Origin: Auanema rhodensis
Taxonomy: Eukaryota > Animalia > Nematoda
Assembly: GCA_964057225.1 (NCBI GenBank)
Contig: OZ059897.1
Location: forward strand, 6,510,001-6,574,000
Direction: 5' to 3'
DNA length: 64,000 nucleotides
A program made the translations under genes and the position numbers. A model generated the notes under the pieces. The model did not search any database. It worked only from the letters and a program-made list of their open reading frames with translations, and was not told where the DNA came from. The first letter of the stretch is position 1. Every line of letters starts with the position of its first letter. Positions 6,475 through 42,242 of the stretch are shown piece after piece.

Positions 6475-7509
6475 TTAGTGATAAGGATAAAAACTTTTAT
6501 TGCAACTTATTCCACAAAGTTTAGCATTAGCGGTATACTGAATCGTGTGAGCTACTGGCCATCCACCGAATGGCGTGAAATCCTTACTTTGTGGAGCTTC
6601 CCCGGTTTCCGGAGCATCGGCCAACCTATAGAAATTCAATGAACTGTGTTCTATTTTGAGTATGAAATACCATAATTTGATATAGTGTTTAGCGAATTGA
6701 AGATGATCAACATTATCAGTAATCTCGCGCCAGTCGTTCTCATTGGTAAGGATACTGATAATATACCAACCCTGAACAAAATAAATGAAAATCTAATTTC
6801 AAATAGAGGCTATTCACTTTTTCTTCAGAAGCATCAAATATTTCCTGAATTAACTGAACATTCTTAGCAGGATCTTTGTTCCAATTCTCAGGAGAAGTAA
6901 CCTATGGAGTGACAAAGTAAAGTAAGACTTCGAAAAATATGAAATACCCAAACATGGAAATGGTTTACTCGACCCAAAAGCCCACAATATGAACTATAGA
7001 TACCGTCCATCATCTCATTGAATTGATCAAACCCACATTTTGACCCTTTTGGAGACGGTATCATGTGGATATTTACATAAATATTTGGATCTGAAAATGA
7101 CAAAACTGAACGGTTGGTCTTCAGTTATAACATACATTGTGCAGCCAGTTTGTATGAATTACATACATTTTTATCAAACATTCCATTATCTTCGCCGTTG
7201 TAAGCTCTTCAAGCATACTATATGAATACGAATTTTAGTATTATTAATTACCTTACCGATATCCATAGTTGGCTATGCTGTTCAGATAAACAGCTTATTT
7301 GACCATCAACTACATGCTGTGAAAAATCTATTATCTGTTTCTTAGAAGTCTAAAAAAATGAAAAATAGTCTTGAAGAAAAAGGGGAACTAAATAAGACTA
7401 CCTCAGAGGAAATGCTAATGAAGATAAAGCTTAAAGTGAAGAATAAGAATAACCTAAATTAAATTAAATTTCAATTATGTTTGAATAGGTATTTATAATA
7501 CCTGGTCAT
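6475..7509 (-). CDS. Protist-type (GH25-like) nematode lysozyme-like protein, copy 1
   Basis: 8 exons: MTRLFLFFTLSFIFISISSE / IIDFSQ..ISCL / AYNGEDNGMFDKNVC / MIPSPKG / VTSPENWNKDPAKN / TNENDWREIT / DFTPFGGW...QY...CGISCNK. These motifs are typical of C. elegans LYS proteins. Confidence 0.88.
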
Positions 7510-7661
7510 TTTTATTAACGTGGTGATATGAAATGCATTAGTGATATTTATAATTATAGAAGAGGAGAAGTTGGCTGATTTTTAAACTTTTTAAATATAT
7601 ACGCAATAAAATATATGAATATAACGTTAAAATGCGTATACCGCATCTTGTCAGACAAGAT

Positions 7662-8140
7662 TATACTTGGGCAATAAATCGGATTTTTACAATTTCGACT
7701 AACGACTAACCAGTGTTTTTCAAGATTAGTCGGATTCAACTAATCAACTAATCACGCATTATTCATAATTTTATTCGAATAATTAATCGACTAATTTAGA
7801 CTAAAAATAATAGTCGAATTAGTCGTTTAGTTCGTAATATTAGTCGTAATTTGTCGCCGTTGATTTTCTGCCGAATTATTATTTATCGACTGATCGTTCA
7901 ACATTCCTTAATATTTATTTCAATTTTATCATATATTTAATTTTACTTTATTTTATTTTACTTTATTAGCATTTCAACTAGTAACATCTATAATTTCCAT
8001 TGGGTCTTCTTCCATATATTGTTCATCTTCTTCCGATTCTTCTACCACTTCCTACTGAAGAGGATTTAGACAAATTTAGTCGATTTTAGTCGTTTTTCAG
8101 TCGTTTTTCAGTCGTTTTTTTTTAACCGTGCCCAAGTATA
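7662..8140. mobile_element. Non-autonomous TIR element (MITE-like)
   Basis: Perfect 12-bp inverted ends TATACTTGGGCA (7662-7673) and TGCCCAAGTATA (8129-8140). Internal CGACTAA/TTAGTCG sub-repeats in both orientations. Confidence 0.65.
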
Positions 8141-8181
8141 TTCACGAGACAAGTCTTGTAACAAGACTTGTCTCGTGAATA
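8139..8181. repeat. Perfect 43-bp palindrome (21-bp arms, 1-nt centre)
   Basis: TATTCACGAGACAAGTCTTGT-A-ACAAGACTTGTCTCGTGAATA. Confidence 0.95.
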
Positions 8182-8439
8182 AAACAAGACTCAGCATGAA
8201 CTTCATGGACATTCCCGGCAAAGTCATGTCTGAACCTAAAATAACGGATGTCTCATTGTTTAAAAAGCAGATTTATTAAAAATAAATAGAATTAATTCAG
8301 AAATATTCAATTACTTTGAATATTTATCTTGTACAGAAGTAGATTTGTTAATTTTCGCGATCACCTCTGATGTTCTTCTTAGTAATTCTATTAGCGGAAT
8401 CAGCTTTACAGTTTATAAAAATTAATTTTAAATCTTGCA

Positions 8440-8660
8440 TTTCAATGGTGAGAGAGAAGATACATGTTTAAAAATAGAGGACTGTATTGATTATTTAAAA
8501 AATTTAGGTAAAGGATGTATTTTCGAAGTAGATTTGGAATATCCTAAGGAATTACGCTCAAAGCACAATGATTTTCCTCTGTGTCCAGAAAATGTGAAAA
8601 TTGATAAACAAACCGTAAAAAAGTTGTGTAATACATTATTTGATAAAGAGAAATATGTTA
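8440..8660 (+). pseudogene. Fragment of a protein-primed family-B DNA polymerase (Polinton/Maverick/adintovirus-like)
   Basis: KGCIFEVDLEYPKELRSKHNDFPLCPE...KKLCNTLFDKEKYV matches the remembered G..EVDLEYP.ELH..HND.PL.PE...KL...L.DK..YV block of pPolB. Intronless and truncated. Confidence 0.8.
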
Positions 8661-9995
8661 ACTCCTCGTTGAACGGTGCTCTGGAATATACATATATACA
8701 TACAACACGATTGAATTACTGTGAGATTACCATTGCAGCAATGTTGATGAGAATCAACGCAGATATATAAAGTTGGGACATTGAGCTTCAGAACTTAATT
8801 GAAAGAAATGATTACAAATTATTTGAAATGAAAGTTTTCAAGAATTTTTTTTGCTTCAAACATTAATTTGAAAAGCCAATTAGCTCTTGATAACTAATAG
8901 ATAAGTTATCACACAAGTTTCTTCCGCAAAACAAGGCGTACACATCTTCTTTTTGGCTTTATAGTGTTCTACATCTATTTGGACGAAAAATCTAATAAAA
9001 TGCAGTTAAAACTTGTATAAATATTGTTTTCTAATATATAATTTATATTTATAAAAAAATTGTGTTATGTTATAAAATATAGGATAAAAATCGGTATTGA
9101 ATGACTTTCATAAGCCCCGTTTTTCTTTTAAAAATATCTATTTTTCTCACTTTTTTCTAATTTTTTTATTTATTTTTATGAATTTTAACCAAAGTTAAAA
9201 CGTTATTATAACAATGAAATAAGAAAAAGTTTTATTATGCATAAGCTAAAAATCATTGAAGACTTTTATACTTTTGGTGACAATGGATGTTTGAAATGAA
9301 ATACAGTTACTATTTTCTTGGGCAAATTCATGATAAGAGCAGCTATATTATAGTCATTTGAACAGAAATAATTATTAAAATTCTAAATATAATGAAAGAG
9401 AAACCGGGAACAGCAAAAAAGGGAACAAGGCAATTAAATTAAATTAACAGTTCACGGCAGAAACAGAAACAATAGCAACAACGAAAATTTTCAGAAGAGC
9501 TGGGAAAAGAGAGTACGATGGAGGGTTCAGAAAAAGGAATTTGCGGGTGGGGTATTTTGAAAGTTTTATCTCTCGAACATCATAGAAATAATCAGTTTCT
9601 TTTACATTTTTAGTTGTTTCTCCACCTGTCAAATGAAAATTTTCTAATTGGTGAAAAGTAGCACAGACTACACGTCTAGCACGTATTTCAATATTTTACT
9701 TGAAATCTCAAAATCTTAAGAAAATCTTTTATAATTTTTAAAAAGTTAAAAGGAGGTTTAGAGGCTACGAACAAACAGGATGTGATGGCCGGATCAAATG
9801 ATAACTTATCTATCAAATATCAGGCGTAGTTGGCTTTAGTCAAATAGAGGACAGAGAAAGATAGAAAGAGAACAAAGGAGAAGCAGAGCGGAAGAGAGCA
9901 AAAAATAATTCGCTTATCTATTAGAAATGTATTCTCATAGATGCATATAAGCAGTAGGCTTCTAACAAATTCTCATATCATTTCACATTTCAACC

Positions 9996-11023
9996 ATGCA
10001 AGCTTATATCCTACTTGGTTTTGTTTTCGTCGGCGTGAATACGGTATATTGGTAGATTTCTGATAGTTTGTTTGTTATTTTTCAATCATTTCAGCTATCT
10101 GCACTTCGTAATATAGATTTTTCACAACCAGTAACTGTTAGTCAAGTTAGCTGTCTATCGAGTTCTCATGACAAAATTGGCGTACACGCCAGGTATTTTC
10201 ATATTTGAAGTCATCGAATCCGCCTGATATGTATTTCAGAATCTATATGGGTGAAAATAATGGAATGTTTGATTATAATGGTTGTACTACAATCAATACC
10301 ACAAAACATTGTACGTTTTTCGTGTTTCATCTTGAGAACAACAACCGTTCAGCTTTGTCTTACAGCAAAGAAATGAAACTTTGAATTTGATGCCATACGG
10401 ATTTCAGATAACAATATATATCCACACCTTTATATGGTGCCATCAGCAAAAAGTAACAAAAGTGGAGAAGTACAAGCTAATGAAGTTATGAATGGTATAA
10501 ATGGTCCACATTGTGCTTTAGGTATCAAACAATTCAGTATTTGGGTATTCCATACTATTTGATAATTCTTTATATAATTCTTTAATTTTATAGGTCAGAT
10601 CACCAAAGGATTGGCATTCAAATCCATCTAAGAATATTGAAATAATTAATGATATTATAAATGCTGCTATTGTAAAAGTGAGTAAGAAATCCTTTTCGAT
10701 TTTGACTTCTTTTTATTCAGAATTGGGTGATTGACAGCATTTACACGAATGTGTTCGATTGGAGAATGATTACAAACGATTTTAATAGCAAAATATTTAA
10801 TCAGTATATTAATTTATGGTATTTCCTGTTCTTAATAGAGCATAGCTTATTCAATTTCTATAGGTGGTCCAATGCTCCTAGCACAGATGACCCCAACCAC
10901 TGCTTGGATGATTTCAAAACGTTCGGAGGATGGACAGCCAAAGACATTAAATATGTTCAGTATGCCAAAAAGTTCGACGCTTGTAGAATAACTTGTAACA
11001 TGGATCACCGTACAAAAGAGTAA
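9996..11023 (+). CDS. Protist-type lysozyme-like protein, copy 2
   Basis: 7 exons: MQAYILLGFVFVGVNT / NIDFSQPVTVSQVSCL / IYMGENNGMFDYNGC / LYMVPSAK / VRSPKDWHSNPSKN / IYTNVFDWRMIT / DDFKTFGGW...VQY...CRITCNMD. Confidence 0.9.
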
Positions 11024-11723
11024 CTATTTCATTGACCTCACAAATATATTTTATTTGTAAAATAGTTTTTGTATATTTTTTTAATCTCAAAAATGAAAAA
11101 TTTTAAAATCAAAATGTAGTGAATGAGAACAAGTTACACCTTTTTTCTAATTCGTTTATTTTGATCTGAAAAAAAAAAGCTGAATACAAATTTTTATGAA
11201 AATGGCTCATCCAGCTTGGTTCACTACGCGTAGTAACTCCGGTCTGCAGATAAGCCTTTCCACGATACAAGGTACCAGAGTTAGAAGGTTAGCACAGGAA
11301 GGTTGCATTTACCAGTTGAAAAACAAGGACGTTGTGTGCTTCCGATAGAGAATGAACCACGGCCTTAAGAGCAGCTTTAATTTAGCAACTAGTTCGAACA
11401 ATTGGTAAGGAAAAACTTGAAACTCAGTGACGAATCAACAACATTGAAAGCAGAGGCGCATCTGTGCACGGAGTTGCTTGATTCATTTCCACGCTACGTG
11501 AACGATAAATCCTTTTTATAAAATAACAGAAAAAACCATGCAAGAAATAAATGTAATAACCTGAGCCCCAGTGTCCGGTTTTGGAGAGAATGTAATCGAA
11601 AGAGATTCATTAGCGAAATACTTTCTGAAGTAGGATCCCACAGTCTTGAAATTGCAATTATTGACTCAATAAAGTGCCGTCAAAAATACTCACTATTTGA
11701 TGTTCTCTTTTACTCCATTAATG

Positions 11724-12723
11724 TCGTTGTGTGCATCTGTTGCCCTCCCCCCCCCCTACAATTATTTCAATGTTAATTCAATTTTTTTATGTTAGCGGTT
11801 GTCTATAGCGCGAAAAAGAGACTCAAAATTTCAAAAAACAATTATATTGAAAAAAAAATTATTTATTTTGATAAAGACTTTCGATAACAAGCTATATCAT
11901 TCAAAATTAAATCAAAAATTCTTTGCCATCTGAATCGTTTTCTGTACATGAATCTAACGTTCCTTTGTGTGATTTTCACATTCTCTTGAATTTCATCTTG
12001 GCCACGTTCCACATAGATTCTACTTTGTTGGTGCAAACACCAGTAGAAGGATCCACAGAATTTTCGAAATGGTTGACGGTCATATTGGTGTAGTTCATCT
12101 CCATCAAAGGTATGCCATTGTAGCTCTTCCAACAATCAGATATGACTGTAGTTCCTTCTTTTATCGATGCAGGATTCCAAAGTTTCTTTGGTTCTATCAG
12201 GAATATGAAGCATTCATTAGTTTTGTGACGAACGCCACCAAAAAGCAAGGCCCACACTTCTCGAAGCAAATTATTCCGGACCGAAATGGAAGATGGCATT
12301 CTTAAAAAATATATAAACAAATATATGCCACTAATCAAATATACCTTCAAACCATGTGCCTGATTTCAAACTGATTTCTTTACTGCATTTTTTATCGATA
12401 CATCGAAATCTATCTCGCTTTTCAGAGAGCATTAATTTCATTTCAGTACCGCAGTTACAAACCCTTTCTTTTGGCAGCAAGTGCTTTTCTTAGAAAAATT
12501 GAATGCATTTTTCTTTAGTGGCAATTAGGGCAAAAAAGCCAAAAAAAAAAAGACCATTCTTATCAAAATAATGAATAGAAATGATTTAAATATGTTAAAT
12601 AATTTATTTTCAATGATGAAAAACGGCTGTATGTATGTATTACCTTCCGGAACATTTAAACTAAAGTCGAGTGAAGACCCAATAATTTAAAGAATGTGGG
12701 GTGGCAACAAAAGCACTAGAGCC
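11724..12723 (-). mobile_element. Degenerate Merlin (IS1016/IS1595, ISXO2-like) DNA transposon
   Basis: Minus strand carries the zinc-ribbon N-terminus (ERVCNCGTEMKL...FRCIDKKCSKEISLKSGTWFE, ~12345-12480) and the catalytic region (LFGGV...GTTVISDCWKSY...TVNH..N.VDPSTGVCTNKVESMWN) with deletions. Imperfect inverted ends GTGCATCTGTTGCCCTCCCC (~11731) and GGGGTGGCAACAAAAGCAC (~12697-12716). Confidence 0.85.
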
Positions 12724-13312
12724 GAATCATCCTTTTTCTAACACTCATACCAGATACGGAGAATTATTTACACCTTTTATATATACGTTGTGTAAAACAT
12801 GTAAACCGATTGATCCGGAGGCAGTGGGTTATCTACCCACCCCATTGTCGCTCACTTGACTCATCTTTTTCCTTAAATTAATAGTGGTATTCTTATAAAA
12901 AAATTTAGTTTTAAATTTTGACAATTTCTATAAATTTCTGTTAGAAACTAATACATTAACTGTCGTATTTCTTAAGCTAATTTTTACATAAATAGTTATA
13001 AAGTCGTAGATTAAAAAGAAAAAATTAAGTCAAGTGAACAACAATGGAGTTTTAACTGATAATCTACTGCAGTTAATGTATGTATTAGTTTCTAACAGAA
13101 ATTTATAGAAATTGTCAAAATTGAAAACTAAATTTTTTTATAAGAATACCACTATTAATTTAAGGAAAAAGATGAGTCAAGTGAGCGACAATGGGGTGGG
13201 TAGATAACCCACTGCCTCCGGACCGATTGGTTTACATGTTTTACACCACGTATATATAAAAGGAGTAAATAATTCTCCGTATCTGGTATGAGTGTTAGAA
13301 AAAGGATGATTC
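12724..13312. repeat. Long inverted repeat (foldback) with ~235-bp arms and ~110-bp spacer
   Basis: 12724-12961 is the reverse complement of ~13070-13312 with few differences. Diverged copies of the internal CACTTGAC/GTCAAGTG unit lie in the spacer and at ~13425-13485. Confidence 0.92.
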
Positions 13313-13708
13313 ATCTTGACAACCGCCAGTACTTTCGTGTTTCCCTATACTCGAGCACCCATATGAAGTACGTGGAATAGTCTTACCCTCTTATATATAT
13401 AAAAACATTTTATATTAAAATGTATTGGTCCGGAGATAGTGGGTTATCGGTTAATTCCCCACTGTCACTCACTTGACTAATTTTGTATTTTTCAAAAATA
13501 TTTTTTGATTTTATATTTAAGTAACCATTAGCTTAAGGAATAAGATAGGAGCGTTATGTTTTTGATTTTTTTGAAATCAAAGTAAAATTTCATTAATGAA
13601 CTAAAATGTTTTCAAATAAAAATTGGAAATATTTAAATATTTAATATTATTTAAATGCTTCAGTCTTTATTCAACAAATCCAAAAATTAAAAAAGAAAAA
13701 TGATTTTT

Positions 13709-13809
13709 ACGTCAAAGTTCACGTAATGGGTGTACGTCGAGTTGGTGTTGACGTCAAAGTTCACGTAATGGATGTAAGTCGAGTTGGCATTGACGTCAAA
13801 GTTCACGTA
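13709..13809. repeat. 42-bp tandem repeat, about 2.4 copies
   Basis: Unit ACGTCAAAGTTCACGTAATGGGTGTACGTCGAGTTGGTGTTG. Confidence 0.9.
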
Positions 13810-13904
13810 TACACACTATGCGAAGACGTAGATGAGATTCAAGCACAAGTCGTTGTACATATTTTACTGTAAACAGGAAGTAAACAAAGACTTTGATAAA
13901 TATG

Positions 13905-14016
13905 GTATACCCAAACATGGAATTTGGATCTCTTATCCGATAGATTAACATAAAAACCTGTGCTGCTTTTCAATACCATATCTCACTTCTACATGTGTTG
14001 TCTAATTGGATCTGAA
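13905..14016 (-). pseudogene. Relic lysozyme exon
   Basis: Minus strand begins TTCAG|ATCCAA and ends TTCCATGTTTGG|GTAT, the same boundaries as the MIPSP exon of lysozyme copy 1. It has an in-frame stop and a diverged interior. Confidence 0.5.
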
Positions 14017-16820
14017 GACATGCGCAACATCCGATTTTTTGTTTCAGAACAAAATAAATAGATGTTTTCGAGTTATAACTTACATTCTTTAGCCATTTTT
14101 AATTTATTATTTGGATGAATATATTGACGAAACAAATTGTTGTAAGATAGGCTAGCCTATATCGACAATTGGATATTGCCTTATATCCAAAATAATCTTA
14201 AATTAATAAATTATATTTTCAATTCGTTTTAGTGTGAGCTATAACTGATTTTTCATATATTTTTTTTTTGTAATTTGTACAATAAATTTCTAGCGAATAT
14301 TTTTTATTTTCAGCAATAGTCAATTTCTTCTATCAAAATTTGAAATTAAAAAATATTTTAATTGTTTACAAATTCAAACTTATATTTATCACAGTGTTAA
14401 CATGTGTTTCCTCTTATTCTTATCACGATTGGTTTTAAAAAGAAGATGTGTGAAATGGAATAAAACATACTTTACAATGTATAAACCAAAAAGAAAAATA
14501 AATTATTTACAAAAATATAATAAACAATCCTAAAATCCACAATTGGATTACGTGTTTACGTCTTTCGTTATCTTACAGAATTAGACATTTTTTACCATAC
14601 TATCAGAAACTTTATTTTTTTTTCAAATGACTTAAAATCCAAGTAAAACTTGAAATATGGGCTATCTGATATTAAACAAAAGAAATAAAAATAATAAAAA
14701 TTTAAGAAAATATTGAACTGAATAATGTACCATATTCCTATATTTATTTTTCATTATTAGACCAAGATGAGCGGTTGTTTCCTTGATATATCAATATATT
14801 TTTTCGAATGTACAGATAAAAAGGCTTGAAAAAACAATTGGAAATTGGAAAAAAAACCAAATACGTTTGTCTATAAGATCCCTATAATGATGACGACCAG
14901 CATTTATTCAAGACATAAAGCCACATGAATGAGCACGAAGAATAAAAAAAACTGAAAATTTGATGAAAATTGTCAGCCTACTTGCTTTTTTAAAATTAAT
15001 TTTGAGAATATAATCTCTTTCTCCACATATATTATCTCTCTCTATCCCCTCTTTCACTCATCTTCTTTGTTCTTTCTTTCGGATTTTCTTTAAGCAGCAC
15101 CTTAAACTCTTAAGATATCGTCTACAGGCGGTGATCTATGTTTTAAAAAATGGCCACAATTTCAAAAATGTATTCAAGATAATTTTATTATTATTATTAT
15201 AACTTATAAGCAAATGAAATAATGAAATTATTATATTTTATTTGTTTAAACATCATTATATAGTTAATAATTTTAATTTATCTCATTGAAAAATGAAAAT
15301 TAATAAATTATCTAAAATTATTTTTACTTTAATATAAATTTAAAAACAAAATTATAATATTTAAATTCATCCATACATAGTAATATGTATAGTATATTGA
15401 CTTAATACCGTTCAAATATGTTCTAGTTAATATAAGGTTTTATTCTGTACTTCAGTCTTGTCACCATGACAACCTGCAGTGTTGAATACGTCATAAATTC
15501 GTCTTATCGAAAGAGAATATATGAGAAAAAATCATTTTGATATGTTGCCACACATTTGTACATATATGTATGTGTATGTATATCAAAAATATTTTCATAT
15601 TCTCAACAATACTTTATAACATTTTTATTTATTGGAAATTGTAAAAAAAAAAATAATTTTTTCATATAATTTTTAATTTTGTTTCGCCAATTTTTCTTCA
15701 AAATATGGAACATTTGATGCAAAATACATTTTCATGTATCGTTCAAAAATTCTTCAACAATACTTCCCATATTCATGCTATTGTTTAATTGAAAAAGTTT
15801 TTATTTGAAAATCAATCTTTAATGGATTGAAACTTGTTTCATTATTCAGATATTTGTATGTGTACTTGTAGAATACTTTGAATATTTAAACTTCATAATA
15901 ACATTTTGTATTTTCTTGAAACTATTTTCTGAGTGGTTACAACTGTATGTTTCAACTTGAACTTTAGACAAAGTTTTAATATTAATAGTATAATTTGTTT
16001 TGAAGCCTTTAAACTAGTCTCTTTCCCGCTTTTTCTATTCCCTCATGCAGCCTTCCTTTTCTCTCTCTCTCTCTTTCTCCCCCTCTCTCTCTCTCTCTCT
16101 CATAACTTAAAATCTCGGGAGATATTTATTTCAAATTCTTGTTACCATTCAAATACATATGTATGTACTACAAAAACGATTCTTATTATTACTGGTAATT
16201 ATTATATATTTTCATTTATTTTCCATTCAATCAGATTTTTCAAATTCTTAGAATATTCTTATTTTATTATTTTTTTATTATAAATATATATATTTATTAC
16301 ATAAGAATCACTAATATTCTGATAAATTCTTCCATACTACTACTCAGCCGATTATATCCATCATCTACATACGTATGGATACATACATACTAGGATATTC
16401 TTCCAACTTTAATTTTGCAAATAATGCTGAAAATTCAAATCAAATACAACAAAGCCATGATGAAAGAAGGATATATTTTTTATTTTTTTGTCTTGTTCAT
16501 ACACATACGTATGATATATAGTATATCAATTTCAACTTCAACTTCAACTTCAACTTCAATTTCAAAATTAAAATTAAAATTGAAATGAAATTCTATTATT
16601 AGTATCGTGATGGATACAAAAAAAAAACTAAAAGATCAACTTATTCATAAAAAGTTTTCTACTTGATCAAGCATGATTTAAATTTCTTATTCATACGTAT
16701 AATTAGCAAATTTTCTTTTGATTTTAAGCCATTTTTGTTTTTTATTTCTAACGAAGCTGTATATTCATTGTAATAATGTATGACATACTAGCGAGGTATG
16801 CAACGTATGAATTCAGATAT

Positions 16821-16889
<69 letters not shown>

Positions 16890-18300: not shown

Positions 18301-18730
18301 ATGGATCGGGGAACACTGGAGTTTCGAGATAATTCAGATCAATACATTGTGCTTACAGTCATTCATATTAAATATTTGGCTATATTTACAAATCTACTTG
18401 GTAAATTAATTTCATTTTTTATTAAATTATCAATACTATACGATATAGTTAGAATTTCTTTTTGATCATATAAGTTTTTTATAGGTTTAGTCATTGTTGT
18501 AGCAGTTTTCAGCTGTGGATTTGCCTTCTTCCCTTGGGCACTATATGATACATCTTTTGATGTAATTGGTAAGATTTTCAGAATATTTCAATTTCTCTTC
18601 GTTTTCTTCTTTTTTTTTCTGAAATGGAAGAGAAAAAAACAAAAAATTAGCATAAAAGCAAATAGAATCATGATTAGAACACGGACTGTATGACAAACAA
18701 TCAGACATTTTCTCAAAATCAATTAGACAA

Positions 18731-18767
<37 letters not shown>

Positions 18768-20873: not shown

Positions 20874-20906
<33 letters not shown>

Positions 20907-20917
20907 TTCTCTCTCTG

Positions 20918-20961
<44 letters not shown>

Positions 20962-24023: not shown

Positions 24024-26863
<2,840 letters not shown>

Positions 26864-27189: not shown

Positions 27190-27274
27190 TATTCATTATT
27201 GAGGAACCGCTCGATATTCAATTTTTCATTTTTCATTGTCAGATCAAGATGAGCGGTTGTGTCTCTGATGAATA
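27190..27274. repeat. Most complete copy of the dispersed ACAACCGCTCA inverted-repeat element
   Basis: Left arm TATTCATTATTGAGGAACCGCTC, right arm GAGCGGTTGTGTCTCTGATGAATA. The right half closely matches 14747-14787. Confidence 0.75.
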
Positions 27275-30356: not shown

Positions 30357-31431
30357 ATGAATAGACTTCAACTGCTCACAATTCATCGCATATTTCATTT
30401 TTGTTTATTTTTGCTAAGCATTCATGTAGTGCAATCTGTTCGATATTGTAATTTATGTTCAGATCCAAGTATAGAAACTGTAGGTTTTATATATTTTAAG
30501 TTGAATTATTAGATTCAAAAACTTAAAATCAATATACATATTTATAGCATTATGGAGGTTTTTTCATAAATCCACGAGATCTTCAGGATGGAATACGCCA
30601 TAATATAACCAGATGTGACAGGTCGAATTTTTTCATTTTCGCTCACATAAATTGCGAATTTTTTTATTTTTCAGAACCAGAGTATCTTTACAAGAATGTG
30701 AAGATAGCTGTTTTTCATTGAATGTTACATCACTGCATATTAAAAGCAAGAAGCTGCTTCCATTCGGTAATAAAGTTTTGAAATTTTTTTTCTAAAACAA
30801 GACGAATGCAATCTTCAACTAATTTCAGGAGTATCTTATGGATGTTCAAGTATGATTATAGAAAACATGAATGCTGTCGGATGCTTCAGAAAAGATATTG
30901 TCTTGAAGTAAGTAGCTTCTCCAATTAAAACTTCAAAGAAAAAAAAAAGAAAAACTTCTCTAGTTACATTGAATCAGCTCGAGAAAAGAAACACATACAT
31001 CATATACATAGATGTATATATATCATACAACCGCTCTTCGTGTTTGAAAATTTAAAAATGAGCGATTGTGCTTTGCATCACGTGGCGTTCTGCGTGAAAT
31101 TCATTTATATATGCTAATGTGTGTGAAAAAACATATTATAAATACAAAATAAATACATATTATACATAAATCCATTTACCCAATCATATATTTTTCATTC
31201 AGGACAGTACCGCCATATGTTGTACAAGCAGATTATTGCTTATGTGATTCAACTGAATGTAATGAAGTTCATATATCTCCGAAATATCAACATCAACAGT
31301 CTTCTGATTCTGCTCATTATCGTAACGGTCAATCATTCTATGGCTATTCCGCTGGAGCATTGCCAATGCTATCTTCATATATCGCTATTATTTGTATTTT
31401 TACTATACAAATGATATTTTATATAATATAG
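30357..31431 (+). CDS. Ly-6/three-finger (ODR-2/HOT/Quiver-like) protein, probably GPI-anchored, 5 exons
   Basis: Signal peptide, then RYCNLCSD...TRCDR...ECEDSCFSL...YGCS...GCF...YCLCDSTECN and a hydrophobic C-terminus. All introns are GT-AG and in phase. Confidence 0.8.
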
Positions 31432-31819
31432 AATTATAATCTTATCACTTAGGACAATACAATATAATACATGATTTCAATAATCATTAGTTATACTTCA
31501 GAATTTTGCTTTATGGATATTTCTATGAAATTTCGTATTCTTACGTCGTTCTCAATGTCTTCAAGTCTTCTGTTCCTCTCTCATCCTCATTTAAGTGGAT
31601 AAAAGATTGAAATGCATAGCTAGCTCTTCTTCTGTCTTTCTTTTTCTCCATTTTTCGAACATCAAATGCCTGTCGACACCGAGAATATAATCCAAAAAAT
31701 TGAATATTTGCATTATTGTGATTCTTCAAAATTTCATATTGTGATAATATAAATCTGAATAAAAGCTTATATTGATTTCTGTTTATTGTTTTTCAGAAAG
31801 TTAAAACAAAAAAAAGTTC

Positions 31820-31930
31820 GGCGCTGGTATTGTTTCGCCAACCAGATAGAGAAAGCTTCAACAAAATTTAAAAGTAATAAAAGTATCAGAGAGAGCACTC
31901 CCACTCGCAGAGAGAAACGATACCAGCCCC
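31820..31930. mobile_element. Short inverted-repeat element (MITE-like)
   Basis: GGCGCTGGTATTGTTTC ... GAAACGATACCAGCCCC, ~17-bp imperfect inverted ends. Confidence 0.5.
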
Positions 31931-34262
31931 AAAAATACATATTATTATAGTTAAAGGATATAAAATTTTATTTTTTCTATTCTTTACTACTAAATGTTAG
32001 TTTGTTCCCAGCTCATATAGAGTATGAAGATAAGATAAAGAGATAAATACATACATACAAACGCATAGTGATCTGCTTTTTCATCTGAATACTGAAACAT
32101 CATTTAGATTTTTAATTTTTTTGTCTAGCTCATGCTATTTCCTTTTCATTTCCAATAGATTTTCATTTTCATTCCGGCTTCCTGTCTTGGCTATGTCGTT
32201 TTTATCAAAAAAAATTGGTTTGTTTTATCAATCTCATCAAACAAGGTTTACCATGTTTATCAATCTCATCAAACAAGGTTTACCAATATCTCCCTGCTTC
32301 CAAACCCCTCAATTAAACTTTCACAAAAAAATATTTTTCTGCCAATAATCTTGAAAGCTAGACCCAAATATTCATTCATCATATTGAATATACATCTTTT
32401 AAAATTGCTCTTCCCATTATTCTCATCATTTCATTCATATGACCTATTGAGAAACAATGAAAAATACTGATTTGAATTTCTAAATTATATTTTTTCCAAC
32501 TTATACGGTAGTCATTATCACATAATCTAATTGGAACTATTATGTTCTTTCATTGTTTTTCATATCCTCAGAATTTGTCTGCCAGAAACAGAAAACGACA
32601 GAGAGTTGGCACACTAGACACTGGCAGACGGTCGTGATCACAGCAGTGACCCGGCCATCTGGTCTTGACCTTCTCAACTACGCTTATGCTTTCCACTGTT
32701 TCCATTATTCTGTATCTCGTTCTTGATATTTAGTATATTTCAAATTATTAATTGACGTTTCTTTTGGGCTTACAACTCTCTTAATTTTTCAGTTTTTGTT
32801 AATAAATATAGAAATTTGGAGTGAAAATGCTAAAAATTCTAGATGTTAAATCATTTTTTTACATATTGTCTGTGAGCATTTTCAATTTTTTTTTATAATT
32901 TCCTTTAATTTTGTCATAAGATGTATATAATTATACCTTTTATACGTTTTCTTAAACATTAATTATATATAAAATTATTTATTTATTCAGAAATAACAGT
33001 TGTTAGATGAGGATGTCGTGTCATCGAAGACATAAAGCCAGCATTTGACCCTTTCTATTTAGCTTTTCCTTTCTACCTATTTTGATTTTTCTATTCTTAT
33101 ATCTTTGACATCTATCTAATTGTCTTTGTTTCACAACTTTATATTTTCTTTCTCTATATCATCGACTCTCATACATTCATATGTTTGTACATTTGACTTC
33201 TAATTAGTAAAATTTAATATTATATAGATAGATAGATAGATAGATACACATATGGATTCTACATACATATACATATATATCTCTATCTATGTGCATACAT
33301 ACATACATACATCTAACATAAAAACGAATTATTGAGCACTTCATCATTGCCTATCCAACATGTCCATTTTCATTCCAACTATTTTACAACCTGAACTTAT
33401 CTTTTATCCTCCTTTTTAAACTCTTGCTTACTTTCCTTTTTTGTGTTTTCGTTCTCCAAATTGAAGTTCTAATTTAAAGAATGTAAAGCTCATGTTCCTC
33501 ACATTTCCGAAACATGTTTATCATTCCAAAGTGCTATTTCATCTTAAACAATCCTTTTCATTCCCGATCATTACGTTTTTCTTTTACTTTACCTGACCTT
33601 ATAACGTGACTTATAACTATTATCCTTAAATGTTTCACCACCCACTGAGAACACTACTTCCCTTTTAAGCTTCTCTTCGTTCGTACAAGCTTCAACTCTT
33701 ATTCTGAACAGTACTCAAGATTGAAAATTGTTTTAGATACCAAAGAACAATTCGATAAACTTCAACTTGAAAGGCTCAAACTTTGAGCGTCTATTTGAAA
33801 TTAAATAAATCATTTTAATCATATCTATACAAATGCTATTAGAACATTGAAGAAGCTTTATAAAAATGTTTTTTTCTCATTTTTTCTTTAAAAAGTACAA
33901 GAATCTCTTTCAAATTTTTATATTTTATTGATAATTTTCTATTTTTTACTTGTATGTATTTTAGATGAACGTTTAGTTATTGTCTGTTTTATCTCCCAAA
34001 CTTCGTTCCAATCCAATTTATTTTTAAACGAATTCTATGATCATTTCAACATCTTTTAGAAGAGAAATTTCCAGTTAATGGCTTTTCAAATTCTTGTGGG
34101 GTGGTCTATCGTATTTTCCCTTCAACTTACTCACCCCCCCCCCCTCTATTTCTTTTCCATCCTCATATCATTTGATCAATTTCAACTTGAGCTTATCCTA
34201 TATGAGCTATTTTTCAGATTTCTTACGAAAGTTTTAACTTTATAATTTTTTTATTTTACAGC

Positions 34263-35741
34263 ATGAGGCATAAACAACTTTTTCTCGTTTTCCTCATCTT
34301 ATTCACACCTGAAGCTACGATCTCTTCAACGCGTCGTTGTCATGAATGTCGAGATGATGGAATTATACAAGTATGTTCTTCAATTTATCCTTTTTTTTTT
34401 TCAAAAAATGAAAATCTGTAAATCTGAAAATTTTCAATTTCTTGGATTTTCTGAGTCCATCTTCCACATAAATCGATATTCGTTTATCTTTTGTCCAGAT
34501 TTTTGATCTTGTTCTTCAAAATAACTGTGCATTCTGTAACAGTGAAACTCGTCATCATACTCAACCATGTTTTTCGACAGAAAAAAGGAAAACGTTGTCC
34601 TTCTTAAGCATATTTCTCTAGAGAATTATAAGAAGTTCTTAGTATAGTCAATAAAATTTGAAAAGTATATAAATTTTTTTTTCTATTTTCCTATAAAAAA
34701 ATATTTTTTTAAAGATGATTCAAGAAGAAAAAAATTATATTGGATTGGATAAATTGAAAATAGATTCACTAACAGAAGTAGTTCCATGTGATCAAGCATA
34801 TGAGGATGACCAGCTGGTATAAATTCACAAATTCGCGTTTTTTCAATCAAGTTTTTAAGATTCCATGTGAAAATTCCTGTATTGAAATTGTGCGTATTTC
34901 AACACATCATAGTAAGATAAAACTATAATTGTTATATACTGTGTTAACATATTTCATAGATTATACTATGAGAAGTTGTATCAAAAATCTTTTGTTGGAA
35001 TCACCCGGTGGTTTGAACTTATCGAACTTTAATGGAACTGGCGTTGACTATTTGAATGCTCAAAAAGGTTGACAAGCTTTTTTCTAAGCGTATGTTTAAT
35101 TTTCGTTTCAGGGGGCGAGTGGAGGTTTGCATATTGTAATGACGATGAATGCTGGAACCCAGGACCACCAGGTTTTTCTTCATTCAATGGCCTTTTAGTA
35201 TTTTTTTAAACTTTAGTGCCTAAACGAGATCGATTGCGAGAGCTAGAAGAGGCATTGGATGAGCTAATCCCAGAGCAAATTCAGGGTGTTCTCAGAATAG
35301 GAATGGCCCTATTATGCATTGTTATTATGCGTAAGTTGATGTGATTTCAAAGATGCTCTTGATGTTCATATGCATTGCAGTTAGCTGCTGTTATAGTGTT
35401 CCAAAGGGAAACAAAGAGAAAAATCTAGCTCAATACAACGTTCGACCATTCAATATACCGGAAAGAACAGTTAACGTATGCTAACTCATATATCATATAA
35501 CCTAAAATTTGACGTTTAGGTTGCTCCTGAATATGTGCAGATGTTAGATGAATACTTAGATCCCAATTTCTCACCCAAGGCTCAAAGAGCACTTGGTTCT
35601 ACTGTAGTGACGGTGGAGAATGTTTGTGATGAAGCCGAAAGAGAGCGTCGATCATCTCATCAGAAGCAGACTCAAAACTCTGAAACTTCAATTCCATTGT
35701 CTGCTGTTACAACTTCTACAAGTCTAAACGTTGTGAACTAG
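34263..35741 (+). CDS. Type I membrane protein with Cys-rich (Ly-6-like) ectodomain, 8 exons
   Basis: MRHKQLFLVFLILFTPEATISS signal, RRCHECRD...PCD...PCENSCIEI...MRSC...AYCNDDECW, TM segment IGMALLCIVIMLSCCY, cytoplasmic tail ending SLNVVN*. Confidence 0.8.
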
Positions 35742-36283
35742 AAGAATCAATTATGACAAACAATGTTAATGATCTCATTCCAGATGATTTCAAAAAATGA
35801 AAAAAATCATCAGATGATTATGAAATGAAAAGAAAAATTGAAAATTTCATAAATGAAGTAAATTTTTAATTTTTTCTTTAAATAATTCAACAACATACAA
35901 GTAAAATAACAAAAAATGGATAATACTACTATGAAAAATGAAGAAAATATCTTTAAAATGAAAAACTTATAAGCAAGTATATGTAACATGCGGCGAATTC
36001 TTAGACAGCATTCTTCTATTTGTTTCCTAACCAATTCAATTCTTTTTATACTTTAAGTAGATGATAAGATAGATCATGGTTAATAAGATTGAATGATAAG
36101 TATATCTATAAGATATCAGAAAATATTTTTGGAAAGAGCAAGAGAGCAAAGAATGAGAGAGCAGAGAAAAGAAGAGAGAGAGAGATTTTAGTGCCCCGTA
36201 TCGTTCGAAAATAATGCATCAAGAGTCGATAAGGAGACAGTTTTTGAAGATTTTTCATTTTGTTTGATACTTCGCTTTCAAAC

Positions 36284-37295
36284 ATGCGGTTTTCTGTACT
36301 CGGCTTCATCCTTATTTGCGTAGGCTCCGTGCAGGTATTATGAACCATTTTTAAAACTTGCTTAAAGGCTTATTATTGAAGACGTATCAACATATAGATT
36401 TCACACAACCGGCAACTGACAGTCAGATGACCTGTCTGAGTACAACTAACAATGGATCTTTGATATTCATCAGGTATTCCCTGATATGAAATGATAATAT
36501 TATAAATAATCAATATGCTTGAAGAGGTTATATTGGCCTGAATAACGGAATGTTTGACAATACTGTCTGTAATACGTATAAACTGGCTCAGGAACGTAAG
36601 TTTCTATATTTTAAACGAAACAACCGCTCATCAGCATTTCAAAACACAAAATTAAAGTTTTGAATATTGCGCTTGTTCAGAATCTAATGTATGGCCATAT
36701 ATTTATATGGTACCTTCTGCACAAGGAACGAAAAGTGCAAAAGATCAAGTTAGAGAATTGGCTGTAGGATTGAAAAACTGTGGTTTGGGATCTGTCAACT
36801 TGATCAGACTTTGGGTATACCTTGACTTTCTATAGTTCTTTCTTCACTCTTCTATCTTTCAGGTTACATCTCCTGATGACTGGAATGTAGATGTTAATAA
36901 GAATATCGAATTCATCAAAGAAATTGTAGATGCTGCTGAAGATTGGGCAAATAATCCATTATTTTAACTTATAACTTTAATTGTTTTGGATTTAGAGAAT
37001 CGATGTTAGAACTATTTACACAAATCAGAAAGATTGGAAAGCTATTACTAACGATATTGATTACAAGGAACTTCATGAGCGATATTCCCTTGGTTTATGG
37101 TATTTCATATTCTCAATAGAGCGTAATTCACTTATTTTTTGTAGGTGGGCCAATGCTCCAAGCACTGATAATTATTCCCAAAACTACGATAACTTCAAGC
37201 CTTTTGGCGGATGGGCCACATTTGACATCAATATGATACAGTATGCCAAAAATGCCAATGTTTGTGGCATAGTATGTAATAAGAATTTCGTTTAA
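36284..37295 (+). CDS. Protist-type lysozyme-like protein, copy 3
   Basis: 7 exons: MRFSVLGFILICVGSVQ / HIDFTQP..MTCL / GYIGLNNGMFDNTVC / IYMVPSAQG / VTSPDDW..KN / IYTNQKDWKAIT / NFKPFGGW..IQY..CGIVCNK. The model needs a GC donor at 36947. Confidence 0.88.
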
Positions 37296-37951
37296 ACTAT
37301 AAACTAATATTTTAATCACGTAAATAAATGTTTATATACAGACTTGTACGAAATAGTTGGGACACTCATTGGAATCCCTTATACCTTCTCAGACAAACTA
37401 CAAAAAATCAGAAAAAAATATATTTTGAGTGTTAAAAAATGATAATGAACTTAGAAAAAATTTAAAATAATCAAAAAATTATGTTTAAAAGTATTTTCTG
37501 AAGTCTCCGAAATTTTCATAAACTGCCTAGGTCTTTTTAAGTCTTCTTTCTTGAATTTCAGAAGTTTCATCAAAAATTAAGATATAATCTCTTAATATAG
37601 TGTTAGGAGTACACTAAACGTCAATTTTTCTTTTAAATGGGAGAATTTGGTTGTATGTTAACCAAGTTCTCTTCATAGATATTCAGTAAGATTCAGATGC
37701 TGAAGCTTACTTGTTTGAAGCTATGCTGCAGATAAAACTTAGTTATTGATCGAGTTTTGTGCTGAGAATCATTTTAAAATATTTTTAATGAAATAACATG
37801 TTCCTAATTTCAAATTTTGTTAAGTCAAAAGAGATTATTCAAAATAGTCAAAAAACACTAAATTTCTTTATAAATTTAGAAAAAAAAATATTGAAATCAT
37901 TTTTTATTATATTAACATATATTTTCACTGAATATAAACTATATGAACTCG

Positions 37952-38041
37952 CAACTCAAAGACCCCAGAAAACAACTTCAAACTACAAAAAAAAAGTTTT
38001 TCTTTTGTAGTTTTAAGGGGTTTTCTGGGGTTTTTGAGTTG
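37952..38041. repeat. 90-nt imperfect hairpin (39-bp arms)
   Basis: CAACTCAAAGACCCCAGAAAACAACTTCAAACTACAAAA ... TTTTGTAGTTTTAAGGGGTTTTCTGGGGTTTTTGAGTTG. Confidence 0.85.
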
Positions 38042-38398
38042 AGAATGTTCCAACAATTTCGCACAGGACTGTACACAAAATGATTTGAAACTTGTGATTG
38101 CCTAGAGTCTATGAACTGAATCTCCTGAAATAACATCTTAATCAGAAAAGTTAAAATGCTTCTACTTTTTGTAAGCCATGACGTTAATTAGATGGTGTTA
38201 GAACCAAACTAATTTCAATATTTCGCGGTTAATTTGATTTCAACTAGGTTACATGACACTAGTATATATATATCAGACAATTTCCAAACTGAAAACCTGT
38301 TCGAATATTAGATACAAACTAGGAGATGAAACGATTATGAGTTATCACGAAGCACTTCTAATGATTATTTAAATAATGAAGACAAGACGAGCTCGTTC

Positions 38399-38423
38399 GA
38401 TAACTTATCTATTTCAAATTATA
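38399..38423 (+). promoter_or_regulatory. Inverted GATA pair GATAACTTATCTA plus TATAAA upstream of lysozyme copy 4
   Basis: The same 13-mer lies upstream of copy 2 (9800-9812, +) and copy 1 (8898-8910, -). GATA sites drive nematode intestinal genes (ELT-2). Confidence 0.6.
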
Positions 38424-38552
38424 AAGAAGAGTTTTGTTACGCTTAAATGACGTTATTTTATTATTTAATCTTTTGAATTTTCTAAAAATCTTAGTATATA
38501 TACTGAGATGTTGATAATTATTTATTCAGCATTTTGTTTTTGCTTATACAAA

Positions 38553-39562
38553 ATGATAAAACTTCAAATCGTATGTTTCGTTCTCATTGGTCTGGTCACA
38601 GCACAGGTATTCCAACCTTTTTCAGTTAATTTCCCTCATTCCTCAATTTGTTTTCAGAACTATGTTGATTTCTCACAGCCACTAAATGATTTACAAGTAA
38701 AATGCTTCAAGACAAACACCATTGACATGCTCTTCATCAGGTTTTTAAAAATACAAACTTATTCATCCAAATATGAATTCAGAGGTTACGCCAATGTGAA
38801 TAATGGAATATTTGATAGTAATGCTTGTAATTCATATCAAACGGCTTTTCATAGTAAGATTTACTTCATTCATATATCAAAGAAACAACCGCTCAACTTT
38901 TTCTGAAAGGTTAAAATGAAAATTTAAATAACGCGCCCAATATTTCAGATTCAATTACATCAGAATTCTACATGATACCTTCTCCAAAGGGACCAAAAAG
39001 TGCTGAAACTCAAGTTTTAGAATTGATTCAAGGAACTTATTATGGGAATTGTAAGCTTCCTCATGTTCAGCAGAGAATCCATCTTTGGGTATTTTCAATT
39101 TCTCCATAAATCGTCGCTAACTTCTTCACTCTATAGGTTTCATCTCCTGAAAGTTGGAATCAAGATCCTGCTAAGAATATTCAATTCATTCAAGATATTC
39201 TGACAGCTGCTAGCTCTAGGGTTCATATTTCTGTTGTTTTCATTTCAACTTAGGTTTTGTTCGTTTAGGGTTGGGTCTTTATCAGTATTAAAACAAATCA
39301 GGAGGATTGGAGTAAGATTACTGGTAATACTAACCAATTCAGCCAACCACCAGTTAAGCTATGGTATTTTATAATTTAAAAATAGCATAATTAATATAAT
39401 TTCCATAGGTGGGCTCCAACTTTAACCAATTTCACTGCACCTCCTACCAGAGATGATTTTAAACCATTTGGTGGATGGACATCTGATACTATTTCAATGG
39501 TACAGAACACCAGAAATGTTCAAACTTGTGGAGTATACTGTAATATTGACAGTTATTTCTAA
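38553..39562 (+). CDS. Protist-type lysozyme-like protein, copy 4
   Basis: 7 exons: MIKLQIVCFVLIGLVTAQ / NYVDFSQP..VKCF / GYANVNNGIFDSNAC / FYMIPSPKG / VSSPESWNQDPAKN / KTNQEDWSKITG / DDFKPFGGW...CGVYCNIDSYF*. Confidence 0.9.
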
Positions 39563-41232
39563 TTATATAATTATTTATAAATAAAAAGTTCATGAAAATA
39601 TTTTTTTAATTCAAAAATAATATTTCTACAAAAAATATTTTAAAAAGAAAATTTGAAATGATACAAAAAATTGCAAGAGCTAACACTTAGTTATTATAAA
39701 ACTAACCAACGAAAGTAATATGAAAATCAAAGTGAACAAAGCAACCTGAGACAACCTCTCAACAACTATTCACACACAAGAACTAACTCATTTTCTCTTA
39801 TTGTAATTAAACTTATTAGCATAGCTGTCTGTATTCTGAAATCCTTCACGCCTATACATCTCAGGATACTCGCCAGTTCCTTGATTCACATATGAGCTCG
39901 TCATGTTTCTTCCAAGTCTAGTCGAAAGACTGAGTGCTCTCAAGCTATCAGTATACCTTCCTGACTTACAAAATGATAATATTATTCAAAGAACATATCA
40001 AGTAAAGTTATATCTACGAAATATAATCAAAGAAAAGTGATATCATTGACCACAGATCATGAGCTATTTTTCAATATTTTTTAATTCTTGATAAGTAATT
40101 GATATTGATAAATATATGATTAACTGTTTTATATCGAATGATCAAATTTTATCAGAAATTTAAAAAAAGAAATTATCTCCATCTTGTTCCTTGATAAATG
40201 AACTTATGAAAGCCAGTATTTCTACTTGATTTTCTGAATAATCAAAGCCATGAATACTGTTGATATAAACACATTTAAACCAATAATTTTGAAATTTGAA
40301 AAGGATTAAGAAATTTCATAGCCCATTGTAGATTAAGAAAGTCGAACTAACTTTAATAACTTATTCATTTGAGATTATCAGGTAGTTTACAAGAAAAATG
40401 ATCAAGAATCATAGTGCTTTCTCTATACTTTGATTACAGCTGAACATGCATACGTTAACTTTCCTATTCGATATGGAGTTGCACGTAACTCATGAATAAC
40501 GAATCTTTGCGTCTCTTCTTTTATATAGATCCGTATATCGTACAGAGTTGACTTTGATTACACATATTTTCAAAAGGAAAAACTCTGATCCTTAGAGGAA
40601 CAACCGCTCAACTTCGTCAAACAACCAAAAATAAAAAGTTGAACATGGCATTTTTGGTTATTAATTTCTACGAATTTTCTTAAATATACATCAAACCAAA
40701 AAAAAGGGAATTTCTATTTGATGAGATGTACAATATAATTCAATGAGGTTTGTTTATCATGCTTATAGTTCTTCAACTACTTTCAGATCAAATAATTCTT
40801 TTCATTATCTCAGTTAGCAGTGGTTCAACGGTGGTTCATCTCCATAAGTTTGCATCAACATATTTGAAATCTTATTTTGATTTGTCGTTATTTGATTGTC
40901 AATATAAATGATCTCATATATTCTTAATAAATGAATGTAATAACAACGATAGACAGCTCAAATGGTTCATATGATTAACAGTCTTATCGCTTTGCATTGC
41001 CTAGAGTCTATGAACTGAATCTCCTGAAATAACATCTTAATCAGAAAAGTTAAAATGCTTCTACTTTTTGCAAGAAATGACGTTATTTCCATTGTATTAA
41101 AGCAGAACTAATATAATAATCTTCAAATGACGTTATTTTATTATTTAATCTTTTGAATTTTCTAAAAATCTTAGTATATATACTGAGATGTTGATAATTA
41201 TTTATTCAGCATTTTGTTTTTGCTTATACAAA

Positions 41233-42242
41233 ATGATAAAACTTCAAATCGTATGTTTCGTTCTCATTGGTCTGGTCACAGCACAGGTATTCCAACCTTT
41301 TTCAGTTAATTTCCCTCATTCCTCAATTTGTTTTCAGAACTATGTTGATTTCTCACAGCCACTAAATGATTTACAAGTAAAATGCTTCAAGACAAACACC
41401 ATTGACATGCTCTTCATCAGGTTTTTAAAAATACAAACTTATTCATCCAAATATGAATTCAGAGGTTACGCCAATGTGAATAATGGAATATTTGATAGTA
41501 ATGCTTGTAATTCATATCAAACGGCTTTTCATAGTAAGATTTACTTCATTCATATATCAAAGAAACAACCGCTCAACTTTTTCTGAAAGGTTAAAATGAA
41601 AATTTAAATAACGCGCCCAATATTTCAGATTCAATTACATCAGAATTCTACATGATACCTTCTCCAAAGGGACCAAAAAGTGCTGAAACTCAAGTTTTAG
41701 AATTGATTCAAGGAACTTATTATGGGAATTGTAAGCTTCCTCATGTTCAGCAGAGAATCCATCTTTGGGTATTTTCAATTTCTCCATAAATCGTCGCTAA
41801 CTTCTTCACTCTATAGGTTTCATCTCCTGAAAGTTGGAATCAAGATCCTGCTAAGAATATTCAATTCATTCAAGATATTCTGACAGCTGCTAGCTCTAGG
41901 GTTCATATTTCTGTTGTTTTCATTTCAACTTGGGTTTTGTTCTTTTAGGGTTGGGTCTTTATCAGTATTAAAACAAATCAGGAGGATTGGAGTAAGATTA
42001 CTGGTAATACTAACCAATTCAGCCAACCACCAGTTAAGCTATGGTATTTTATAATTTAAAAATAGCATAATTAATATAATTTCCATAGGTGGGCTCCAAC
42101 TTTAACCAATTTCACTGCACCTCCTACCAGAGATGATTTCAAACCATTTGGTGGATGGACATCTGATACTATTTCAATGGTACAGAACACCAGAAATGTT
42201 CAAACTTGTGGAGTATACTGTAATATTGACAGTTATTTCTAA
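41233..42242 (+). CDS. Protist-type lysozyme-like protein, copy 5 (recent duplicate of copy 4)
   Basis: Matches 38553-39562 at offset 2680. I see only three differences: two intronic and one synonymous (TTT/TTC). Confidence 0.9.

Follow-up and report, generated by a model that had tools for sequence, protein, structure and literature searches.

A decamer retained in one intron of lysozyme-like paralogues of Auanema rhodensis is probably the downstream half of a dispersed antisense core-promoter cassette

A stretch of 64 kb of the nematode Auanema rhodensis (assembly GCA_964057225.1, contig OZ059897.1, positions 6,510,001 to 6,574,000; hereafter the window, with positions counted from its first letter) contains five lysozyme-like genes that carry the decamer CAACCG(C/T)TCA in the same intron. 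We consider it probable (about 0.6) that this decamer is the downstream half of an ancestral core-promoter cassette for RNA polymerase II (Pol II), oriented antisense to the genes and belonging to a dispersed family. Judged from its sequence, the cassette appears generic and not immune-specific, with the strand antisense to the lysozyme-like genes as the informative one; this orientation is indicated by an initiator and a downstream element found at canonical spacing on the opposite strand. The first-pass annotation of this DNA had taken the motif for an enhancer or splicing element co-regulating the lysozyme family, a proposal that finds no support, given the presence of the same module at non-lysozyme sites and the promoter-type match seen when the other strand is read.

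A tblastn search run separately for each exon of one copy located five paralogous genes in the window resembling glycoside hydrolase family 25 (GH25), with a common seven-exon structure. Their positions, together with those of intron 3 and of the exact decamer, are as follows.

6478..7331, minus strand: lys1, GH25-like gene, mapped exons 2-7; intron 3 at 7091-7135 (45 nt), decamer at 7107-7116 (-)
10113..11020, plus strand: lys2, GH25-like gene, mapped exons 2-7; intron 3 at 10311-10407 (97 nt), decamer at 10342-10351 (+)
36391..37292, plus strand: lys3, GH25-like gene, mapped exons 2-7; intron 3 at 36596-36680 (85 nt), decamer at 36621-36630 (+)
38553..39559, plus strand: lys4, GH25-like gene, exons 1-7; intron 3 at 38854-38948 (95 nt), decamer at 38886-38895 (+)
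41233..42239, plus strand: lys5, copy of lys4 whose exons give the same translations; intron 3 at 41534-41628, decamer at 41566-41575 (+)

Mapping of the exons placed the decamer on the sense strand of intron 3 in all five genes, a phase 1 intron that follows the exon encoding NG(M/I)FD..C, at 19-32 nt past the 5' splice site. This agrees with the same intron, phase and orientation originally described, and also with the description of an intron of about 45 nt in lys1 that still holds the core. The number of copies had to be corrected: there are five motif matches at genes, but lys4 and lys5 are a single 1.24-kb duplication (about 38430-39670 and 41110-42350, offset 2680) with only 3 mismatches, so the independent lysozyme-like copies are four, not five. 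The two duplicates are set apart by unique spacer DNA, and the duplication is either a very recent event or an assembly artefact. Between paralogues, amino-acid identity was 41-47%, third-position identity 47-55% and synonymous divergence (dS) 1.1-1.6; the paralogues are old and their synonymous divergence is saturated, in keeping with the strong protein divergence reported before. The decamer was the longest invariant internal block among the introns of these genes.

The decamer was strongly over-represented, with 9 exact matches in the window vs. 0.11 expected from dinucleotide-preserving shuffles, and 0/100 shuffles reached 9. Outside the lysozyme-like family it was found at the following positions.

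2586, minus strand: exact decamer
14768, minus strand: exact decamer
27250, minus strand: exact decamer
40601, plus strand: exact decamer
31028, plus strand: near-copy
49332, plus strand: near-copy
52683, minus strand: near-copy

At least two of the non-lysozyme copies lie outside introns of mappable genes, one in the lys4-lys5 spacer and one in the spacer between two small-RNA genes. The copies, when lined up on the decamer, have in common a rigid module of about 75 nt, in which a second box resembling AAATGAAA stands at a fixed distance of 18 nt, with weaker conservation on either side; the bipartite pattern with this fixed spacing gave 8 matches vs. 0.37 expected. A weight matrix was built with the flanks of six non-lysozyme copies only, leaving out the decamer itself, and it recognised the intron copies of lys4 (p<1e-4), lys3 (p=0.003) and lys2 (p=0.018), which indicates that the intron elements are members of the dispersed family. 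The copy in lys1 did not score above background with this matrix, owing to the loss of the distal stretch of that intron. Since intron, strand and a similar distance to the 5' splice site are common to all copies, intron 3 in the ancestor of these genes most likely already contained the element; these common features, at a dS of 1.1-1.6, argue for inheritance plus constraint. This supports the earlier idea of a retained ancestral element, which has been kept here against saturated synonymous divergence. A metagenome scan for the module returned 28 single matches vs. about 29 by chance (a rough estimate that assumes about 1e12 bases), in unrelated contigs of mostly higher GC.

Read on the opposite strand, the decamer becomes T(+23) G A R C G G T T G(+32), where GGTTGT at +28..+33 matches the DPE (downstream core promoter element), and CGG at +27..+29 matches the CGG of the motif ten element (MTE). 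The first G of the DPE falls exactly 27 nt after the A+1 of an initiator (Inr) of sequence TCATTT or TTATTT. The copies examined site by site were the following.

38885..38919, minus strand: lys4 intron 3, intact cassette with TCATTT, A+1 at 38917, GAGC at +24..+27 and GGTTGT at +28..+33
41565..41599, minus strand: lys5 intron 3, intact cassette, A+1 at 41597; duplicate of the lys4 copy, not independent
36620..36654, minus strand: lys3 intron 3, intact block with the DPE; TAATTT, a weak initiator, stands at the exact spacing, with A+1 predicted at 36652
10341..10376, minus strand: lys2 intron 3, remnant with TCATTT (A at 10374), DPE at +29 (1 nt off) and the T-variant block GAACGGTTGT
7107..7116, minus strand: lys1 intron 3, decamer with the downstream block alone kept; the initiator position falls inside exon 4, with no initiator there
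14744..14778, plus strand: non-lysozyme cassette, TTATTT, A+1 at 14746, GAGC and GGTTGT at +24..+33
27226..27260, plus strand: non-lysozyme cassette, TCATTT, A+1 at 27228, GGTTGT at +28
31027..31061, minus strand: non-lysozyme cassette, TCATTT, A+1 at 31059, GGTTGT at +28; CACGTG upstream
40600..40634, minus strand: cassette in the unique lys4-lys5 spacer, TTATTT, A+1 at 40632, GGTTGT at +28
49331..49365, minus strand: cassette, TCATTT, A+1 at 49363, AGTC and GGTTGT
52650..52684, plus strand: cassette, TTATTT, A+1 at 52652, GAGC and GGTTGA; ACGT boxes upstream
2586..2595, minus strand: T-variant decamer without a correctly spaced initiator; TCATTT 3 nt off

The spacing between both elements was sharply defined. 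Distances from the A of TCAKTY to GGTTG gave 7 counts at +28 and two or fewer at any other distance, and nine of the 22 CGGTTG sites were accompanied by an initiator-like hexamer (YHA+1KTY) at the exact offset, as compared to 0-2 at each other offset from -12 to +12; with a background rate of 1.3% for this hexamer, about 0.3 would be expected vs. 9 seen. Among the eight independent cassettes the initiator was TCATTT in four (lys4 included), TTATTT in three and the weaker TAATTT in one (lys3), and positions +28..+33 were GGTTGT in 7/8 and GGTTGA in 1/8. In this same set, two segments stood out by their information content, namely -2..+4 (consensus T(C/T)ATTTT, with 1.77 bits per position) and +24..+33 (consensus GAGCGGTTGT, with 1.78 bits per position), every other segment carrying at most 0.86 bits per position. 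The GC content was 0.59 in the downstream block vs. 0.08-0.35 in the putatively transcribed flanks (-2 to +50). CGG at +27..+29 was invariant, and GA(G/A)C at +24..+27 fits the SAAC of the MTE consensus CSARCSSAAC (+18..+27); positions +18..+22 were weakly conserved and did not fit the revised MTE CGANC. No TATA was present at -30, and the similarity of the module, which is position-specific, ended at about -30 and +45.

In every lysozyme-like gene the cassette is antisense to its host, and its state is graded among paralogues, from intact (lys4/5) to weak initiator (lys3), 1-nt shift (lys2) and block only (lys1). Throughout the family, cassettes do not keep one orientation towards the host gene, since the cassette at 49363(-) lies just downstream of a coding-looking minus-strand exon (49496-49783) and runs in the same direction. 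The C/T variation of the decamer corresponds to G/A at +26 on the opposite strand, a position occupied by A in the original MTE consensus. All three decamers of the T variant (CAACCGTTCA; lys1, lys2 and 2586) lack exact initiator spacing, whereas all C-variant copies have it; T-variants may be decayed or represent a functionally different subclass, and the copy at 2586..2595 is probably one or the other.

Some additional features accompanied the cassettes. A subset of them presented paired ACGT/CACGTG boxes at -15..-35, able to form a small hairpin (2530-2560 (-), 31075-31095 in plus-strand coordinates, and 52615-52640), in place of which the lysozyme copies displayed a GC patch. A second, inverted and degenerate, copy of the block overlapped the cassette at 31027..31061. 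Within intron 5 of lys4/5, TCATTT (39242 and 41922, +) was located exactly 27 nt before a GGTTGG at the start of exon 6; this Inr/DPE-like match lies on the sense strand, has no GAGC part and its spacing is not kept in lys1, so that it is probably due to chance.

According to the promoter interpretation, one cassette of the dispersed family would have lain in intron 3 of the ancestral gene and all paralogues would have inherited that copy. TFIID-type machinery would bind the cassette and RNA would start at the predicted A+1; in lys4/5, and more weakly in lys3, the start is predicted within intron 3, with the RNA running antisense across exons 3 to 1. Several facts weigh against this interpretation. 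In both lys1 and lys2 the block is retained nearly unchanged with no initiator at the proper position, and around the decamer these two genes agree at 17/18 bases despite a dS of 1.39, which indicates that the block is constrained even without a proper initiator. The block may therefore act independently of the initiator, this being the main loose end for a pure TFIID view. It is also longer and far more invariant than the fly DPE, and this high invariance could mean that a sequence-specific protein, instead of TFIID, is involved. The predicted starts were followed by no convincing coding open reading frame (ORF), the conserved segments at -14..-7 (ATATTCAA) and +34..+44 (TTCYTTGAT) have no counterpart in flies, and the independent intact cassettes in the 64-kb window are only eight. 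Of the sequence words, 18-19% occurred in four RNA sequencing runs of small size.

Promoters combining Inr and DPE are already known and textbook knowledge in flies. The fly core promoter has the Inr TCA+1GTY, for which the forms TCA+1KTY and, more loosely, YYA+1NWYY are also given, and the DPE RGWYV(T) at +28..+33 under strict spacing, with the revised MTE contact CGG at +27..+29, and a change of a single nucleotide in the Inr-DPE spacing costs several-fold activity (PMC5580651). The cassettes resemble these TATA-less, TFIID-dependent promoters of Drosophila in that TCATTT fits TCA+1KTY, GGTTGT fits RGWYVT at the same positions, CGG occupies +27..+29, the two boxes keep a spacing exact to the nucleotide and there is no TATA at -30. 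In contrast with the degenerate fly DPE, the downstream block of the cassettes is nearly invariant across 10-11 nt; further differences are the additional conserved segments at -14..-7 and +34..+44, the location of several cassettes inside introns and not before annotated first exons, and a nematode host. In C. elegans, the DPE has been reported not to be enriched downstream of start sites (PMC3730108). What appears to be new is the occurrence, in a nematode of the rhabditid group, of an Inr-DPE cassette with rigid spacing and high information that is often located in introns and was here kept antisense through several old duplications, to which the window contributes the retention across old paralogues, the graded decay and the split between C and T variants. 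If RNA does start at these sites, a nematode would use a rigid fly-type promoter made of initiator and downstream element, often within introns; the turnover of core-promoter types between animal lineages would then become directly testable, and so would the control of an apparently non-catalytic lysozyme-like family by a conserved antisense start. The case is also a caution that, when introns of paralogues keep a motif, this may be part of a generic promoter seen from the wrong strand, and not a family-specific regulator.

Other explanations were considered for the same data. The invariant block TGAGCGGTTGT could be bound by a protein that recognises this specific sequence, such as an activator, an insulator or a factor of chromatin domains, and its DPE register would then be secondary or coincidental. 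The 1.78 bits per position over 10 nt, far above the degenerate RGWYV, and the retention of the block in lys1 and lys2 without a properly spaced initiator speak in favour of such a site; however, a stand-alone site predicts neither an initiator at the exact offset (9/22) nor a match at every defined DPE/MTE position, and we regard it as improbable. An enhancer or splicing element read on the sense strand of the intron, confined to the lysozyme family and co-regulating it, would account for the same intron and strand throughout the paralogues and for the longest invariant intronic block. This is very improbable in view of the occurrence of the module outside the family (4 exact and 3 near-copies in 64 kb, at least two of them not intronic in mappable genes), the lack of conserved RNA structure in the introns (z 0.02, -1.48 and 0.65) and an informative partner motif whose fixed offset is what a promoter of the opposite strand would typically show.

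It is equally hard to credit that the element is a sense-strand promoter of snRNA type (snRNA, small nuclear RNA), similar to the SNAPc-bound proximal sequence element (PSE), with CAACCG as the PSEA-like box, AAATGAAA as the PSEB-like box and a small RNA codirectional with the lysozyme gene. CAACCG bears some letter likeness to CAAC-containing fly PSEAs, and one CAACCG is located 101 nt upstream of a gene similar to Y RNA/stem-bulge RNA (sbRNA), whose -58..-46 region has ATGAAGTACGTGG. However, the positions that are invariant in insect PSEAs (ATTC-CAA, T5 and C6 included; PMC1761439) are absent, AGAAA and not ATTCN being found upstream of CAACCG. Moreover, the second box stands 6 nt past the place of a PSEB, CAACCG is missing in cis from the two sister sbRNA genes, and no known RNA family is found downstream of any copy. 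A neutral relic of a mobile element, either a miniature inverted-repeat transposable element (MITE) or the 5' end of a retroelement, inserted by chance in the ancestral intron, would explain dispersed copies of similar length per site and the inverted second arm seen in two of them (27259 and 31028; z -2.8 and -2.3). Long interspersed nuclear elements (LINEs) of flies carry internal Inr+DPE promoters. Nevertheless, similarity stops at about -30 and +45, most copies are without terminal repeats or target duplications, conservation is position-specific instead of uniform, and the block has been kept in paralogues at saturated dS, all of which leaves little credence for this origin.

A somewhat less remote alternative, still unlikely, is that the cassette works as a mini-gene from which short capped RNAs similar to Piwi-interacting RNAs (piRNAs) are made, the lysozyme introns merely acting as its hosts. 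Pol II would start at the initiator and pause or terminate at +24..+33, giving precursors of about 28 nt with the variable +3..+23 as the small RNA. The invariant GC-rich block is located where such a pause would fall, and it follows sharply on a variable, AT-rich +5..+17 segment (GC 0.59 vs. 0.26); the predicted starts are without a following ORF. CATT/TATT of the initiator agrees with YRNT, the motif at which precursors of nematode piRNAs start, although this agreement is automatic for any initiator. Copies occur every few kb, several of them intronic and in either orientation to the host, resembling the organisation in Pristionchus, where active genes harbour piRNA loci in their introns, in both orientations (Beltran et al. 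2019, PMC6436959). The likeness to these loci extends to short scattered units, a YRNT-compatible start and a change of sequence downstream of the start that could favour pausing. Unlike them, the cassettes have no upstream GTTTC (Ruby) motif, neither at the place expected for it, about 40 nt before a 21U start, nor in their consensus, and the conserved partner is downstream of the start; in addition, the partial conservation of +18..+23 would limit the diversity of small RNAs. The canonical Ruby core CTGTTTCA appeared 2 times in the window vs. 3.2 expected, neither of them at a cassette; it is therefore not enriched, and its role may be vacant in this genome. As an extension of this possibility, which we hold to be only slightly probable on the available sequence, the cassette might be the replacement of Ruby-motif piRNA genes in this lineage, with thousands of intron-hosted units, and the copy in lysozyme intron 3 would yield a small RNA antisense to the pre-mRNA of the family.

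An intron-encoded structured RNA or a mirtron was rejected, as the lysozyme introns fold no better than shuffles (z 0.02, -1.48 and 0.65). Rfam scans, the later ones covering 1-39600 and 39670-64000, found no family near any copy at gathering or E-value thresholds; only a tRNA and three Y-RNA/sbRNA-like genes were detected, none of them at a cassette. In C. elegans, intronic non-coding RNA loci have upstream motifs of their own (UM1-3), which are promoters of PSE type or with tRNA-like boxes preceding an snRNA, small nucleolar RNA or sbRNA that can be recognised (PMC2527325). Unlike these loci, the cassettes have boxes of the Inr/DPE type and are followed by no known RNA family.

The statement of the first-pass annotation that the other introns share little recognisable sequence did not hold for intron 6, which was exactly 45 nt long in the four independent copies, with 23 of its 45 columns invariant and ungapped pairwise identities of 69-78%.

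6626-6670, minus strand: lys1, conserved 45-nt intron 6
10819-10863, plus strand: lys2, conserved 45-nt intron 6
37100-37144, plus strand: lys3, conserved 45-nt intron 6
39364-39408, plus strand: lys4, conserved 45-nt intron 6

Overall conservation of intron 6 was at least as high as that of intron 3, although the decamer still exceeded it in the length of the invariant block. Part of what the first-pass annotation had named as refuting its own proposal, equal conservation in other introns, was thus observed. The invariant positions of intron 6 include an internal AATAGAGCATA-like stretch, despite saturated synonymous sites.

Regarding the products of the host genes, all protein analyses were run on separate exons, one by one. 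Pfam scans of single lysozyme-like exons gave no match. A profile of the last exon from the four paralogues retrieved 19 proteins from a representative library, with PF01183 (GH25) present in 3 of the 7 that were scanned with Pfam, and in a language-model search 21 of the 30 named matches fell in the GH25 set. In the separate-exon alignment of the four independent copies, LW closes exon 4 and V(S/T/R)SP opens exon 5, whereas classical GH25 proteins have (I/L)D(V/I)E there; the catalytic D-x-E after LW was not present, the Asp being missing and the Glu replaced. The exon 4/5 junctions with LW-V(S/T/R)SP are the following.

39088/39137: lys4
6948/6901: lys1
36814/36863: lys3
10544/10594: lys2

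From this alignment the lysozyme-like proteins are probably non-catalytic, the catalytic pair seemingly being absent. A word search with the ORF of exons 1-3 found no sister-species orthologues, the search of the representative library with the last-exon profile returned distant GH25-like proteins only, and a search for sister-species DNA with an ORF encoding an RNA-recognition motif (RRM) gave a single distant match.

Other features were located in the neighbourhood of these genes.

12807-12869, plus strand: Y-RNA/stem-bulge-RNA-like gene (Rfam)
13167-13229, minus strand: Y-RNA/stem-bulge-RNA-like gene (Rfam)
13421-13486, plus strand: Y-RNA/stem-bulge-RNA-like gene (Rfam)
42744-43136, plus strand: transposase-domain ORF, helix-turn-helix of Sleeping-Beauty/Tc1 type
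11976-12350, minus strand: transposase-domain ORF, ISXO2/IS1595-like DDE
43740-44878, plus strand: overlapping long ORFs in two frames (340 and 359 aa) with Pro/Thr-rich repeats and no Pfam match

One of the three Y-RNA/sbRNA-like genes reached the gathering score of ceN72-3_ceN74-2 and two remained below it; each of them has a TATA box near -27 and a common CACYCATA..TACG box near -60, and two of the three form an inverted duplication of about 190 nt. The transposase-domain ORFs, which lie beside the lysozyme clusters, are probable transposon remnants. The long overlapping ORFs at 43740-44878 may correspond to a mucin-like repeat exon or to a simple-sequence artefact.

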